Origin: Adineta vaga
Lineage: Eukaryota > Animalia > Rotifera
Assembly: GCA_021613535.1 (NCBI GenBank)
Contig: CP075494.1
Location: 11,718,001-11,782,000, forward strand
Direction of reading: 5' to 3'
Length of the DNA stretch: 64,000 bases
Shown here: piece after piece, positions 35,991 to 43,943 of the stretch
Numbering within the stretch: the stretch's first letter is position 1
How the letters are laid out: each line of letters opens with the position of its first letter
The notes under the pieces: generated by a model
What the model was told of the DNA's origin: nothing
What the model saw: only the letters and a program-made list of their open reading frames with translations
The model's database searches: none
Program-made: the position numbers and the translations under genes

Positions 35991-36500
35991 CACTAGCGGA
36001 GATACCCGCTGCAAAAACGACACAATTTACGTTTTTCACCTACAGCAGTGCTTTTCTTATCACCCACAGGACCTCTCCGTTCGTATTTATCCGTCGTGTA
36101 TCAAAAAATCCTCACACCCTACTTTTCCACCCTGACTTAGTTAGTGTAATCTTTCAGCTCGTCACTCAGCGTACGTTACCTGTCCCCACACGTCTTTGTT
36201 CTCCGTACTGAGATCCTTCCTATATCCCTTTTCGGGTCATGCACCAGGTCTTTTTTTCAGAACTTCGCAACGCTTCATAGTTCTTTCCTACTGATTTTAT
36301 CTCGCTATGTATACGACATACAGCTCTGTTCCTCTTAAATCCACTCCTACTGTCCCGCTGCAACTCCAGTCCCATTCTATACCCACTGTCCCGCTGCAAC
36401 TCAAGTCCCATTCTACACCCACTGTCCCGCTGCAAGTCATTCTCTACTTTATAAACTTCACTTCTACTCTATACAGGTAGAGTAGTCATTTCACTCCAGA
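35991..36500. mobile_element. CACTA/EnSpm-like element end (one terminus only)
   Basis: Starts CACTAG at the GPCR breakpoint, with a compositional shift and ~36-bp tandem repeats at ~36349-36435. The second TIR was not found and the right limit is approximate. Confidence 0.45.
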
Positions 36501-36864: not shown

Positions 36865-39236
36865 CTATTCACTAGGTCCACTATGTTCATCCATCATAGA
36901 TCGAAAACGACATAGTTCGATCAGAGATATGTTTTGATTTGTTAGTCGTAATGAATCCTGTTGAAGTAATGATAGAATCTGTTGTGTATCACCTGCTTTT
37001 ATATAGCTGTGAAGATAAACTAAACTTCGACCATCACACCCATCTAGAAGCCGAAGTATCTGGACGAGTCTATGCTCAGTCAGCCATTGTTGGACTTGGA
37101 ATTGTGACCATGCTGAAATCTTTCGAGACGAAGATGTCCCGGTCGTTCGAGCCTCTTCAATGTGAATGTTCACTGTCGATTGGATAGGTGCGGTGTTGGT
37201 TTCATGGTTATCGTTGGCTCTGAGTTCTTTCATCAACATTTCCATTGCACGATCAAAGTCATATTTTGTAAAGTCAACATACAATAGTTGACCGATCAGA
37301 AATAACAACCAACCATCGGGTTTGTAATGCTTTTGCATGAGAACAGGAACAATTTGACGTTGTCGTTGAAATGCATAATGTGCTTCTGCTCGACAAAAGT
37401 TACTCTTTCGATATTGTTCACTCATACAGATAATGATTGTTTGTGATCGATCGATGGCTTGTGCCATTGCATCCATGACATTACCATGCATTTGATCAAA
37501 GTCGATCCATACTCGATAGTTTCGTCGAATGAGTTCATCATAGAGCTGTTTACAAAGTACTTTATCTTTGTGCGAATAGCTGATCATGAAATCGAAAGTG
37601 TCTTTGGGTGAGATGTCGTCATTGTTAGGATGATGCTGTTGATTGATCTGGAGATTCCAAAGAATACCAGTGGTTGCTTTTCGTATCTGTTCATCATCCG
37701 ATTGTTTTGACAAGTGAGATAATTTCTCGATGAATGTTGAATTGGAAAGAAGTTGTTGTTGAATATCATGATTGAATGAAAGTGCCCAGATAATATCGAA
37801 AACAATTGGATATTGGTCAGACATATCAATAATAAGTATTAGTTTATTTGAATATGCCGTTCTTTCTTGTATACTATCATTTTTTGATAAAATTTGAAAA
37901 CCTAGAACCAAATAGAAAATTCATTTCAATCTATATTGATAGAAAAATAGTTATCAATGTATATATGTTGCAATTCGGTGTACATTTTTAAAGATCAAGT
38001 ACCTTTTAACATATATTCTAGTGGTATTTGTCGAAACACTTTCGATACACATTTCCATGCTTCTTCCATTATTTGAAAGAAATAATCATTAATATTATCA
38101 GCAATCTTTAAATCTTTCAATTGATCCTCTGAAAGAGTTTCACCAAGTATGCAATATCCACATAAACAAACTTCATCATTTAGTGCAAGTTCAGCCACAG
38201 ATACGATTGTGTCTCGTACAGTAGTATTTGAACGAAAGAACCAATTTACGTTCTGACTTTGAACGATAGTTAATAAAATCATCAAAATTGAATCGATTAA
38301 AGTTGTTTCATCATTTGATCGGATGGATTTTGTTTGACCATAAAATTGTTTATGAGCAATAATACGAATAAGATCTTCTATGTGATTACATGTAATTTGT
38401 TCCGTTGGAAAAATGATTTTTAAGTGTGTTCGTTGTTTTCCATCCCACCAAAAACATTCGGAAAGCAAGCCAGTAAGCTGTGCAATACATCCAAGTAAAT
38501 TTTTATTCCACGACTTTACGGTATGACTATGAAAACGGATGATTTCCAGATAATCATCGTAGAGAAAAGAAATCATTTGATCGGCAGTGTATGGAAAAGA
38601 AGAAAGTTTTCTAATCTTGTAAGTATATGTATAAAATGTGCATGTTTTCAAATAAAACAACAATTTGCTTGTGAACATCGACTCTGACAAATGTAATTGC
38701 CGAAGTTGGGTGAGATAAAACTTATGCGTTTCGTTCATGATACAATTGTGGATGATATATTGATCAATATGATCAACAACGGATGGCACGTTATGTTGTG
38801 GATTTTCATAAAGAAAATACGAGTAATTATCGAGCCAAAGACTAACAAAGGTAATAAATAAATCATTCTGATCGTTTGTTTCATCGATTTGTCTGCATAT
38901 AGATTTAATTTGATCAACAGTTACACAGAAAAGAAGTGTTGTCTTATGAGTAGCGTCAATATCATCATTATTGAAAATAAGTTTCTTATTGAAGATTGCA
39001 ACATTATGAAATAATTCCACATATGAATATTCTTCCAATCGTTGGCGATCATTTTCACTCAATAGTTTCCACATCCACCTTTCCACAATCAACAATGATT
39101 CATATGATTGATTAATAAATGATGACAATGACTCGTCAGTTTGTTGTTTAAAAATTAGGTTTAATTGTTGAATAGTGTCGATTGAGATATGACATGCTTC
39201 CAACGATGAAACAAGTTCATTAAAAGTATTATTCAT
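36865..39236 (-). CDS. ARM-like/TIR/SAM protein, copy A (exons 39236-38003, 37901-36865)
   Basis: ARM-like IIWALSF...ATTGILWNL; TIR FDFMISYSH...VWID...SNFCRAEAHYA; SAM-like WSQFQVQQWL...DGRSL. Confidence 0.85.
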
Positions 39237-39640
39237 CGTCTTTCGTTCTTTCTGAAATGGTATCATATAATGTGTCTCAAATAAATATATTAGTTTCATC
39301 GATATTTGTGCATATGAATATTATTTTTACTTTCGTCATTTTGACTACAATTATACATGCGCATTACCTGTCACTCGATATTTCTGTCAACATATTATCG
39401 ATCTTCGAGCACTATTTGGAATACGATTGACGAACATTCTTTCTTTTTTTCATTCATCAAAAAAGACTCTTATGTCGTCATACGACATTCATTTGTATTA
39501 GTCTTATACATAAAATGACGATTGAATTGAATAAATTAAAAAGAATGACACAGTTTTTCTGTATACTTTGTTTGAATACTGACGTCATTTCGAAAAGAGA
39601 GAAACATTTTGATGTTGTATAGAAAACTAAGATTATCAAT

Positions 39641-42064
39641 TTATTTCTTTGTAATATTCTCGTTCGTTGATGACACAACATCTACTTTATCTTTCTGTTC
39701 AGAGTTTGTTGCTGACTGATTGTATTTTTGTTGATGCATCAATGATTGAAAACGCGACAGTTCAACCAATGATACACTTTCATTCAGTCGACGAATACTA
39801 TCTTCTTGAAGTAATGATAGTACTACGGATGATTGACCATGTTTCACGTATTTATACAAATGAATCAAACTTCGACCATCGTAATCATTCAAAAGACGAG
39901 ATAGTTGAACAAGTTGATGATCGATCAACCACTGTTGAACTTGTACTTTTGTCCATTCTAGCATTAGATGAGGCTTTGCTGCAGTTGATGGTACTCGAAC
40001 GGATGAAAAAATGGCTGGAATAGAAGTTACACTAGTTGTCTCTTGCTTTGATGGAACAAGTGTAATGTTGGTTCCACGATTATCGTTGGCTCTGAGTTCT
40101 TTCATCAACATTTCCATTGCACGATCAAAGTCATATTTTGTAAAGTCAACATACAATAGTTGACCGATCAGAAATAACAACCAACCATCGGGTTTGTAGT
40201 GCTTTTGCATGAGAACAGGAACAATTTGACGTTGTCGTTGAAATGCATAATGTGCTTCAGCTCGACAAAAGTTACTCTTTCGATATTGTTCACTCATACA
40301 GATGATGATTGTTTGTGATCGATCGATGGCTTGTGCCATTGCATCCATGACATTACCGTGCATTTGATCAAAGTCGATCCATACTCGATAGTTTCGTCGA
40401 ATGAGTTCATCATAGAGCTGTTTACAAAGTACTTTATCTTTGTGCGAATAGCTGATCATGAAATCGAAAGTGTCTTTGGGTGAGATGTCGTCATTGTTAG
40501 GATGATGCTGTTGATTGATCTGGAGATTCCAAAGAATACCAGTGGTTGCTTTTCGTATCTGTTCATCATCAGATTGTTTTGACAAGTGAGATAATTTCTC
40601 GATGAATGTTGAATTGGAAAGAAGTTGTTGTTGAATATCATGATTGAATGAAAGTGCCCAGATAATATCGAAAACAGTTGGATATTGATCAGACATATCA
40701 ATGAATAGTAGAATCTTTTTCGATTTGGCTGTACCCTCTTGAATGAAATCATTTTTGGATAAGTTAAGAAAACCTAGCATGAATTATATATAAACTTCAT
40801 GCATTTATAACAGTTTTCAATATTATTTACCTTTTAGGAAATAAGAAATTGGTATTTGTTTAAATTTCTTTGCGGGATTTTGCCATGCTTGTTCTAACAT
40901 ATTAAAGAATAGAATTTTTATACTATCAGCAATTTTTAGCTCTTTTAAATGTTCTTCTGTGAGTACTTCACTTAATATTCCATATGTGCATAAATATATT
41001 CTGAAATAGACTGGTGTTTCTGCTAATTCCAGAAGAACATTTGGTAATTGTACGATAGAGCGAAAAAACCAATTGATATTATGTGTATGTATAATATTCA
41101 TTAGAAAGAGCAGTACAGAATCCATTAAAATTGTTTCATCATTATACCATTGTCTCATAAGTAGTTTGTAAAATGGTTCATATTCGATAATACGAAATAA
41201 TGCTTGTATGTATTCGCAGAGTACTTTTTCTGTTGAAAATAAATCTTTTATTTTAATTCCTTGACCTCCATCCCACCAAAGAAATGCACGCATAAAACCG
41301 ATCAGATGGGTAATACAAGCAAGTAGCTCTTTACTCCAGAACTCAACAGTAGAACTTTGTACTTGTATCATCTGTAGATATCCATCTGTCATATGTTTCA
41401 AAATCTGTTCTACATTGCAATTGAAAATCGTTGGATTCGTATAAAAATAAGCATTCAATGACAATGGACATGTTTTCATGTAGAATAATTGTTTAGATGT
41501 AAATATCGTTGGTGACAACTGTATTTGACGAAGTTGACTAAGATAAAATTGAAATTTCCTACTAAGAAGAAAATTCTGTCCAATATATTCATTTATATGA
41601 ACAATAATAGGTATTTGTTTTAATTGAGGATATTCATGAACCAAATACGAAAGATTTTCAAACCAATAATTAGCGCAAGTAATGAATGGATGGTTATCAT
41701 CATCAGTTTTCTCAATTCGATCAAATATTGTATTGATTAATTCAATAGATTCAGGAAGGAGAAGTGATATTTTAATCTCATCTTTAATATCATCTTGTTC
41801 AAAAATTAAATTCTTATTAAATAATGCCAAAGTTTCAAAAAGTTTCAAACAATATGGTTGATGAAACCAATCATTCGAACTTTCAGTCAATATTTTCCAT
41901 ATTTTATGTTCTAACCGCACTAATGACTCATTTACTTGTGTAACGAATACCGGTAAAGATTGTTCAACGTGTTGTTTGAAAATCAATGTTAATTGTTGAA
42001 GAACATCAGTACATGCAGAAGATATATTTATTTCAGTAATAAGTTGCTCAAAGGTTGCTTGCAT
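39641..42064 (-). CDS. ARM-like/TIR/SAM protein, copy B (exons 42064-40831, 40773-39641)
   Basis: Same architecture and intron position as copy A. SAM-like WTKVQVQQWL...DGRSL. Confidence 0.85.
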
Positions 42065-42424: not shown

Positions 42425-43943
42425 CTAATTTGTTGATGCTCGTTTCGCTGTTGGTATTAATGATTGCTGTTGTTGTTGCTGCTGCTGCTGTTGCATCTGA
42501 GTACATTCAGAACAGTACCATTTTCCTTTTGGCGGTGTAATAATACCAACACAAGGATAATGAAACCATTCCCGACGGCATGCCTGATTATCACATGCAA
42601 TCATATCTCCATAACTCATTTCATTACAAAAGCAATATCGGCGTTCATCAATCGTTTGCCCTGGAAAGTTTGATAGAACATTTGCTGAATCAAAACCACC
42701 ATTAGTTTCATCATCGAATAGATTTGGTGATGCTGTTTGGTTTGGTAATTGAAAATAATCAGCTGTTGACGGATTATTCGATTGTAAATTTGATGCTGAT
42801 GATGATTCATCACTATCACTTGGTGGCAGAATATGATGTAATGGATGAGATTGATATGAATCATTAAGAAATGGATTACGTGTTGCACTTCGTTTTCGAT
42901 GTTTGCCAATATTATTAGATGATGATATACCTTGTAGACGTTTTCGACCACGTGTTGATCCAGATGGATTTGATAGAAGACGTTGTGGATGTTGTTTACG
43001 ATTGAATAATGACGAAGAATTAGATGGAAGTAGACCTGTATCATAAAAATGCATTTTGAAAAAGAAAATACAATTGGTAAGTAATCTTACCCGATGATAA
43101 ACGACGAGAATGTGATGACATTAAATAACTTAATGTTGATTGACTTGTATAATCATCATGTATTGAACTGGACATGGTAATATCATCAAGTGGATCAAAG
43201 AATGGTTCCGTATCCAAAAGAGATGGATCGATATTACCTTGAATAAGAGAAAACAATTTATACGTATGATTATATCTTTGATGACATACTATTTTCGCCA
43301 GCCATATTATCATATTCATTGAAACCTTCGCTTGCAAATCCTAGAAGATAGTTTGTACATGATTAATTGTTGATTTTTAAGAAGAAATAAACAAACGTTT
43401 TTCTAATGTTTCTGTTATTCCTGAGTAATCTGCTTCTAATTCCATTTTAAATTTATTTAAATCATTCTCCAATTTTTTATAATAACGTTCAACAATATCA
43501 TGAGAATCATTAGCTAAATTTGCTTTTGCTTGTGTTGCTTTGAATAATTGCTGATGTCTTTCAACAAGTTTATCATATTCAATTTGTTTTTGTTGTTGTG
43601 CAGCTAATTGCTCTGGTGTTAATTGTTGTTCACTGGTTTCAGTCATAGATTCTTCAATCGTACTAGTTAAACGATGTGTATTAATTTTTGATCGTGTTGG
43701 AGAAAGGGAAGATTGCTGTTGATATTGACGATAACTAGTAAGAAATTGTGATGCATCTTCTTCTAATTGAGCAAATTCAGCTTGAATTTTTAAATCATTT
43801 TCACGCATGAGAGTTAATTTTTCACGCATTATTTCTGGTAAAGGATCGAGTACTATCATCAGAAAATATGTATAAATTACAAATAGAATGAGGAAAAATA
43901 TACAATTCAACTTACATTCAAGATAATCTTCGAGATAATGCAT
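42425..43943 (-). CDS. ING3: Inhibitor of growth protein 3 (PHD finger)
   Basis: MHYLEDYLE start, [16 protein letters not shown], and [20 protein letters not shown]...WFHYPCVG...KWYC. Confidence 0.9.

Follow-up and report, generated by a model that had tools for sequence, protein, structure and literature searches.

The closest precedent for the locus described here is the TLR1/TLR6 pair of mammals, two tandem paralogs whose N-terminal parts track orthology, and in which a C-terminal block containing most of the TIR domain is closer between paralogs than between orthologs owing to independent conversions in each species, for which the authors proposed co-evolution with shared partners (Kruithof et al. 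2007, PMC2077338). We analyzed a stretch of 64,000 nucleotides from the bdelloid rotifer Adineta vaga, hereafter the window (contig CP075494.1, here C5:11,718,001-11,782,000), in which two neighboring genes, A and B, encode proteins built of an ARM-like solenoid, a TIR_2 domain, a variable linker and one SAM domain, and share a near-identical, TIR-centered tract within otherwise diverged sequence. The original prediction, made from the letters alone, had placed this system in a probably asexual animal, which agrees with its bdelloid source. TLR1 and TLR6 are leucine-rich repeat (LRR) transmembrane receptors, whereas the rotifer family is cytoplasmic; unlike the mammalian pair, exchange here involves at least five genes over ~50 kb, similar tracts are found in other arrays, a second exchange, of linker and SAM domain, was made by one partner pair, and the host is a bdelloid. 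It is well supported that the tract is a new example of a known phenomenon, in an uncharacterized bdelloid ARM-TIR-SAM family. Concerted evolution restricted to one domain of an animal TIR family is seen here cleanly and with strong statistics, in three bdelloid species and over tens of kilobases.

Comparison with two further systems shows both shared parts and differences. Plant nucleotide-binding LRR receptors (NLRs) that carry a TIR module (TNLs) occur in clusters in which paralogs exchange sequence and recognition parts differ; exchange in plants often diversifies the LRRs, and typical paired plant NLRs are arranged head-to-head. The rotifer array has no NB-ARC or LRR, its genes are head-to-tail, no integrated decoy was seen, and exchange homogenizes the TIR. 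Similarity to SARM1 and to Caenorhabditis elegans TIR-1 lies in the ARM solenoid, the SAM domain and a TIR with Glu at the catalytic position, and full-length SARM1/TIR-1 were among the Foldseek matches of the exon-2 model. However, SARM1 is ordered ARM-SAM-SAM-TIR and the family here ARM-TIR-linker-SAM with a single SAM, and this domain order rules out membership of the SARM1 family. The TIR is also nearer in sequence to bacterial Cat1 and to TLR2 than to tir-1, and SARM1 was absent from the top 50 VIA structural matches of the N-terminal solenoid. Literature searches on bdelloid TIR families and on ARM/SAM TIR-DC classes returned nothing specific to the rotifer family. The analysis defines an uncharacterized family, so far bdelloid-only, with SARM1-like parts in another order.

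A near-identical TIR tract in genes A and B

Gene A (36865..39236, minus strand; product ~756 aa) and gene B (39641..42064, minus strand; product ~788 aa), both delimited from open reading frames and sequence reading, are separated by 404 bp from the stop codon of B to the ATG of A. Each consists of two exons around a phase-1 GT..AG intron: exon 1 of A spans 39236-38003, the intron 38002-37902 and exon 2, including the stop, 37901-36865, with corresponding positions in B of 42064-40831, 40830-40774 and 40773-39641. The introns (101 nt in A, 57 nt in B) are mutually unalignable. Full-length family members in public databases are modeled in the same way, with 411 aa, a junction Gly and then exon 2.

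We found that 37208..37830 in A and 40080..40702 in B (both minus strand), which hold the last ARM-like repeats and the whole TIR domain, align without gaps and differ at 7 of 623 nt (98.9% identity). Of these differences, located in A coordinates at 37816, 37805, 37699, 37486, 37432, 37387 and 37327, only that at 37805 alters the protein (Ile to Thr) and the other six are synonymous, and the first mismatches beyond the tract occur at 37831/40703 and 37207/40079. Identity in 60-nt windows rose sharply from 0.55-0.68 at the flanks to 0.97-1.00 in the tract before falling again, and ranged over 0.45-0.70 in exon 1 and 0.2-0.65 in the linker and SAM tail. The longest run of identical sites was 212 nt, compared to a maximum of 47 nt in 10,000 permutations of a single mismatch vector pooling aligned columns from both exons. 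Exon 1 of the two genes shared 59% of nucleotides and 40% of amino acids, and outside the tract in exon 2 nucleotide identity was 46% for the linker and 61-64% for the SAM domain. Synonymous divergence (dS) was 0.052 in the tract, compared to 1.35 in both exon 1 and the SAM domain; nonsynonymous divergence (dN) of the SAM domain was 0.42. Ninety amino acids of otherwise variable ARM repeats lie within the tract.

These results match most of what had been read from the letters. A near-identity of 623 bp with about seven, mostly synonymous differences had been reported by eye, and the count is exactly 7 with 6 synonymous; the sharp borders and the diverged N-terminus, introns, linkers and SAM tails reappear as a step in the 60-nt windows against flanks that are ~60% identical. 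Gene conversion, which had been proposed as the cause, is favored by the drop in dS and by the tree conflict and approximately unbiased (AU) tests reported below.

Recurrent TIR-centered conversion in three bdelloid species

Across the A. vaga assembly (100.8 Mb in 6 contigs), the family comprises 12 intact paralogs, all with the same phase-1 intron. P5, P4 and P3 are located just ahead of the window start on the same strand as A and B, with P3/P4 45 kb off, and P8 and P9 lie ~20 kb beyond them on the opposite strand; P8 has the same sequence as UJR22645.1, annotated as 'hypothetical protein I4U23_025685 [Adineta vaga]'. The remaining paralogs are the tandem pair C2a/C2b on C2, C3a/C3b on C3, and a single copy on C1. 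C3a and C3b (loci L019 and L020; G000:C3 5,270,062-5,270,656, plus strand, and 5,105,260-5,105,854, minus strand) are 98% identical over the whole gene, inverted and 165 kb apart. The pair stems either from a recent segmental duplication with inversion or from a haplotype that is duplicated in the assembly.

The A/B tract was 94-95% identical to P3/P4 and 85% identical to P5, rising to 94% over a 410-bp core, and other tandem pairs had TIR-centered tracts of their own (P3/P4, 675 bp, 98%; P8/P9, 365 bp, 97.5%; C2a/C2b, 195 bp, 96%). The TIRs of the unlinked C1 and C3a/b are intact and showed no exchange with the array. A second exchange tract in B, at 39716..40079 (minus strand), covers the linker and SAM domain and is 95-99% identical to P5, which is situated at G000:C5 ~11.7153-11.7179 Mb with the shared tail part at ~11,715,340-11,715,780 (L018 1920-2290). 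Between B and P5, identity was 95% for the linker and 99% for the SAM domain (dS 0.00-0.03), compared to 46% and 61% between B and A, and B and P5 grouped together in the SAM tree (support 100/99). B is a mosaic of three parts, in which exon 1 is its own, the TIR resembles that of A and the linker and SAM domain resemble those of P5. In the exon-1 tree, A grouped with P4, P5 and C3a/b (100/99) with B outside, while the TIR-tract tree united A, B, P3, P4 and P5 (100/99) with C3 outside. The AU tests rejected a sister relationship of A and B for exon 1 (p = 4e-6) and, for the TIR, the grouping obtained from exon 1 (p = 0.0018). Homogenization of the TIR among five array members, together with the B/P5 tail, indicates an array-wide exchange network and not the private tandem pair that had been supposed; nor do the head-to-tail order, the 404-bp spacer and exchange among at least five genes fit paired (sensor/helper) immune receptors, for which a head-to-head arrangement with a common promoter and specific hetero-association would be expected.

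We also assessed how far the same pattern extends to other bdelloids. A profile of the N-terminal domain matched 137 cluster representatives among 1.84 billion, and all named matches that were looked up were bdelloid, from Adineta, Rotaria or Didymodactylos. Two Didymodactylos carnosus proteins, P0207 and P0260 (1747-1865 aa), combine a distant relative of this domain with TIR_2, a long ankyrin array and a TRP-like Ion_trans domain, and may reflect either a true fusion or two genes merged during annotation. When 67 family proteins were placed in an N-terminal tree, A, B, P3, P4, P8, P9, C2a, C2b and C1 each fell in a separate orthogroup that also held orthologs of other bdelloid species, and most of these groups included both Adineta and Rotaria; exon 1 of A has orthologs in A. 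steineri and R. magnacalcarata, and exon 1 of B in As1 of A. steineri and in Rotaria proteins. Because these orthogroups contain members of both genera, the split between A and B is older than that between Adineta and Rotaria. Omega (dN/dS) of exon 1 was ~0.25-0.38 between orthologs. The N-termini had been predicted to be diversifying as sensors, and such values in old orthogroups with orthologs in other bdelloids do not support that.

The A. steineri locus L024 carries, in order, a PHD/ING gene, As1 (ortholog of B), As2 (ortholog of A) and As3 (ortholog of P5, with 76% amino acid identity in exon 1), matching the order of PHD gene, B and A in the A. vaga window. As3 (L024 13010-14242) has an in-frame stop at codon 135 of exon 1, at which public annotation splits the gene into 134 and 613 aa, and which marks either a pseudogenized allele or a sequencing error. 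The gap between the A and P5 orthologs is ~460 bp in A. steineri and ~37 kb with unrelated genes in A. vaga; either A. vaga has gained this sequence by insertion or A. steineri has lost it by deletion. TIRs of As1-3 were 94-95% identical at the nucleotide level (dS 0.25-0.31), compared to 82-83% with their orthologs (dS 1.3-1.8), while exon 1 was 70-72% identical between orthologs and ~60% between paralogs. As1 and As3 share their tail (linker 86%, SAM 89%), though the A ortholog sits between them. In R. magnacalcarata (locus L023), identity between Rm1 and Rm3 was 93% for the TIR (dS 0.3) and 56% for exon 1.

Over the three species, nucleotide identity of the TIR was 94-95% within A. steineri, 93-98% within R. 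magnacalcarata and 93-99% within A. vaga, compared to 72-83% between orthologs, and the trend was reversed in exon 1. In the per-domain trees exon 1 grouped by orthology and the TIR by species and array. AU tests rejected ortholog clades for the TIR (p = 5e-7, 6e-8 and 5e-4) and species clades for exon 1 (p = 3e-4, 2e-35 and 6e-5). The number of proteins, out of 54, with a same-species paralog nearer than any ortholog was 2 for exon 1, 13 for the ARM-C region, 21 for the TIR (with 2 further ties) and 12 for the SAM domain. These results show that TIR-centered conversion has been recurrent and independent in A. vaga, A. steineri and R. magnacalcarata, with exon 1 exempt, such that TIR-based trees of families of this kind mislead on orthology.

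Origin of the tract identity

We consider it likely that the identity of the A/B tracts stems from interlocus gene conversion within a TIR-centered concerted evolution of the array, a process that would be neutral and driven by homology. One gene's TIR segment would have been copied over the other's during homologous repair in a recent ectopic event, and the A/B patch would represent one event of a long process in which the TIR core of exon 2 evolves in concert across an array running through ING, B, A, P5, P4 and P3, whereas exon 1 tracks orthology throughout. Repair would begin in the TIR, which purifying selection would hold most alike and which would hence offer the longest identical runs, and each event would leave hundreds of identical bases that favor the next. 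Tracts would end where homology collapses, in the indel-rich linker on the 3' side and in the ARM-C region or the intron on the 5' side, and patches reaching the diverged N-terminal part either would not form or would be purged by selection. Between non-exchanging paralogs the TIR was the most alike part (75%), with longest exact runs of 24 nt in the median (maximum 39), compared to 15 nt in exon 1 and 10 nt in the linker and SAM domain. GC content at third codon positions of the TIR was 0.33-0.39 in A, B and P3-P5 and 0.10-0.26 in the other paralogs, which hints at long-term GC-biased conversion. The array thus shows gene families of bdelloids being shaped by ectopic homologous repair.

Two points weigh against neutral, homology-driven conversion. 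First, B and P5 orthologs share linker and SAM domain in two species, in A. steineri with A between them carrying a different tail, which is poorly explained by homology alone, though self-reinforcing homology could be its source. Second, sequences that start out 75% identical, with runs of 24 nt, are ill suited to recombination, and it may take selection to account for how regularly exchange falls on the TIR.

Selection for co-assembly is the alternative that retains most weight, and we regard it as possible but clearly less probable than neutral conversion. TIR signaling depends on assembly between TIRs, and selection could keep the TIR identical so that mixed oligomers form, with the ARM solenoids as distinct sensors in a receptor network akin to the sensor/helper type. 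Such selection is consistent with TIR homogenization having taken place independently in three species while orthologs reached dS > 1, with its reach across 45 kb in A. vaga, and with the conservation of the array and its gene order. Tail exchange that is partner-specific in two species, linking B with P5 and skipping A, also leans toward selection, and the same argument was put forward for TLR1/TLR6 (PMC2077338). However, association, co-expression and an immune role would follow only by analogy, and the same TIR-centered pattern is predicted by the neutral model, which fits it about as well. The SAM domains of A and B, likely oligomerization modules, are strongly diverged at the protein level, so that co-assembly of A with B is not favored over that of B with P5. 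Genes arranged head-to-tail rather than head-to-head, and unlinked C1 and C3a/b copies that hold intact TIRs without array exchange, also argue against such selection, and a TIR common to at least five genes argues against a specific A/B pair.

A more elaborate form, which we find doubtful, would make the array a cooperative network in which each ARM solenoid senses its own cue, all feed one mixed TIR assembly, B and P5 form hetero-oligomers through their SAM domains, and conversion itself is selected. It predicts that all members co-assemble via the TIR and B with P5 via the SAM domain, and whether TIR identity matters for signaling is testable as well. If true, the array would parallel in an animal the sensor/helper networks of plants, with ectopic recombination maintaining it in a lineage that has long been considered asexual.

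Unequal crossing-over or shuffling of exon 2, giving chimeric genes along with copy-number change, is improbable as the source of the mosaics. The three-part mosaic of B would be expected from it, as would the whole exon-2 tails that several species share between orthogroups and the variation of copy number by species (e.g., Rm1/Rm2). Yet the A/B tract is internal to exon 2, with two borders and diverged sequence on either side, and repeated crossovers would delete or duplicate intervening genes, against which the gene order and orthogroups conserved between A. vaga and A. steineri argue.

An assembly or polishing artifact, with tracts collapsed or cross-polished, is very improbable. Cross-mapping of short reads during polishing can wipe small differences between similar copies, but it is unable to raise ~72% identity to 99%. 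In addition, the tracts have 7 private differences and each copy has unique flanks, the window contains no N, and similar domain-restricted tracts occur at P3/P4, P8/P9 and C2a/C2b, with the pattern repeated in the independent A. steineri and R. magnacalcarata assemblies.

That no DNA was exchanged, and that the identity comes from extreme purifying selection on the TIR or from a constraint on its codons, has next to no probability: the TIR is the most conserved part, with omega of ~0.05-0.16 between non-exchanging copies, but a tract dS of 0.05 against 1.3-2.7 for the same TIR codons in orthologs and distant paralogs rules out purifying selection alone, since protein constraint cannot explain such a contrast, and the inclusion of otherwise variable ARM repeats and the strongly supported tree incongruence likewise oppose it.

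Domain architecture, predicted function and neighboring features

The proposed ARM-TIR-SAM architecture was supported by Pfam, AlphaFold2 (AF2), Foldseek, VIA and a SAM profile, for all of which the exons of A and B were searched and folded separately and never as a joined protein. Exon 1 encodes an ARM/HEAT-like solenoid of 411 aa (38004..39236 in A, orthogroup 'A'; 40832..42064 in B, orthogroup 'B'; both minus strand). The AF2 model of exon 1 of A is an all-helical solenoid (predicted local distance difference test score, pLDDT, 84.9; predicted template modeling score 0.87) that matched importin-alpha, beta-catenin and designed ARM proteins in Foldseek with probability 1.0 and low template modeling (TM) scores of 0.2-0.35, as is usual among solenoids. 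VIA matches included a chain of the GID E3 ligase complex (6swy; Z = 17.7), APC-ARM (Z = 15.2) and p120 catenin (Z = 14.5). In Pfam, nothing in exon 1 was above threshold and Arm appeared only below it, and a sequence search of the PDB with the N-terminal profile gave no match.

Exon 2 begins with further ARM-like helices, followed by TIR_2, the linker and SAM. The TIR domain spans 37213..37602 in A (exon-2 aa 100-229) and 40085..40474 in B (both minus strand), and Pfam TIR_2 was detected in both copies (88.9 bits against a cut-off of 28; E = 4.6e-25 in A). The fold agreed with the TIR of Hydra TRR-2 (4w8h; Foldseek TM 0.81, root mean square deviation 2.8), and a profile search of the PDB with the TIR returned Cat1 (2.8e-8), TLR2, RPV1 and tir-1 (E = 3e-4). 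A Glu at the catalytic position had been predicted within CRAEAHY, and in HMMER alignments this residue (GAA codon 37386-37384 in A, codon 40258-40256 in B), in the position of an S..Y..S..C..E motif, does align with the Glu of Cat1 and TLR2; it is invariant across 11 aligned A. vaga paralogs.

The SAM domain is located at 36892..37113 in A, where it was identified from a family profile against the PDB and the AF2 model and is diverged from that of B, and at 39737-39958 in B, inside the B/P5 exchange tract (both minus strand). In the AF2 model the SAM tail forms a five-helix bundle (residues 266-339, pLDDT ~80-86), and all matches but one of the family profile with E < 1 in the PDB were SAM/PNT domains (best E = 1.5e-4). 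Pfam SAM_3 passed its cut-off of 22.6 in Rotaria P0147 (25.3) and scored below it in A (15.3), and a single-sequence PDB search with the SAM tail of A gave no match. CaaX-like C-terminal boxes (CSMM, CQTM, CEIM, CQIM, CNIL, CQIL), often after basic residues, terminate six of the 12 paralogs, namely P3, P8, P9, C2a, C2b and C1 (loci L017, L016, L021, L022), and suggest prenylation; A, B, P4, P5 and C3a/b are without them.

By analogy with SARM1 and further TIR proteins, the family probably signals through self-association of the TIR, which possibly also cleaves nicotinamide adenine dinucleotide (NAD+). As a working model, the SAM domain would drive oligomerization and the ARM solenoid would be regulatory, gating or ligand-binding. 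Several animal TIRs, rotifer ones included, are reported to make cyclic ADP-ribose (2026 preprint, 10.64898/2026.04.20.719644), and Table S2 of the same study lists bdelloid proteins in cluster A0A0B7AZE4_1 ('helical repeat + TIR') with a TIR at ~508-645 and Glu at ~578-587. The family here fits these coordinates (TIR start 509-516, Glu 579-587), and by eye the lancelet and alga TIRs tested from the cluster share the motifs MISY...RVW.D...AMA...ICMS..Y..S..CR.EA.Y.FQ...IVP....YKPDGWL with it. Membership of the cluster is probable on these sequence grounds, although accessions could not be matched. Counting against catalytic activity, none of four TIRs assayed from the subfamily that probably matches was active in lysates of E. 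coli (10.64898/2026.04.20.719644, Table S4).

Upstream of B, the last exon of a PHD-finger (ING-like) gene occupies 42425..43054 (minus strand; Pfam PHD hit) and serves as a synteny anchor in common with A. steineri; this exon contains a poly-Gln run. About 430 bp 3' of the gene A stop, the window carries a 36-bp tandem repeat at 36349-36439 (2.5 copies, 94% matches), which gives short repetitive open reading frames on either strand.

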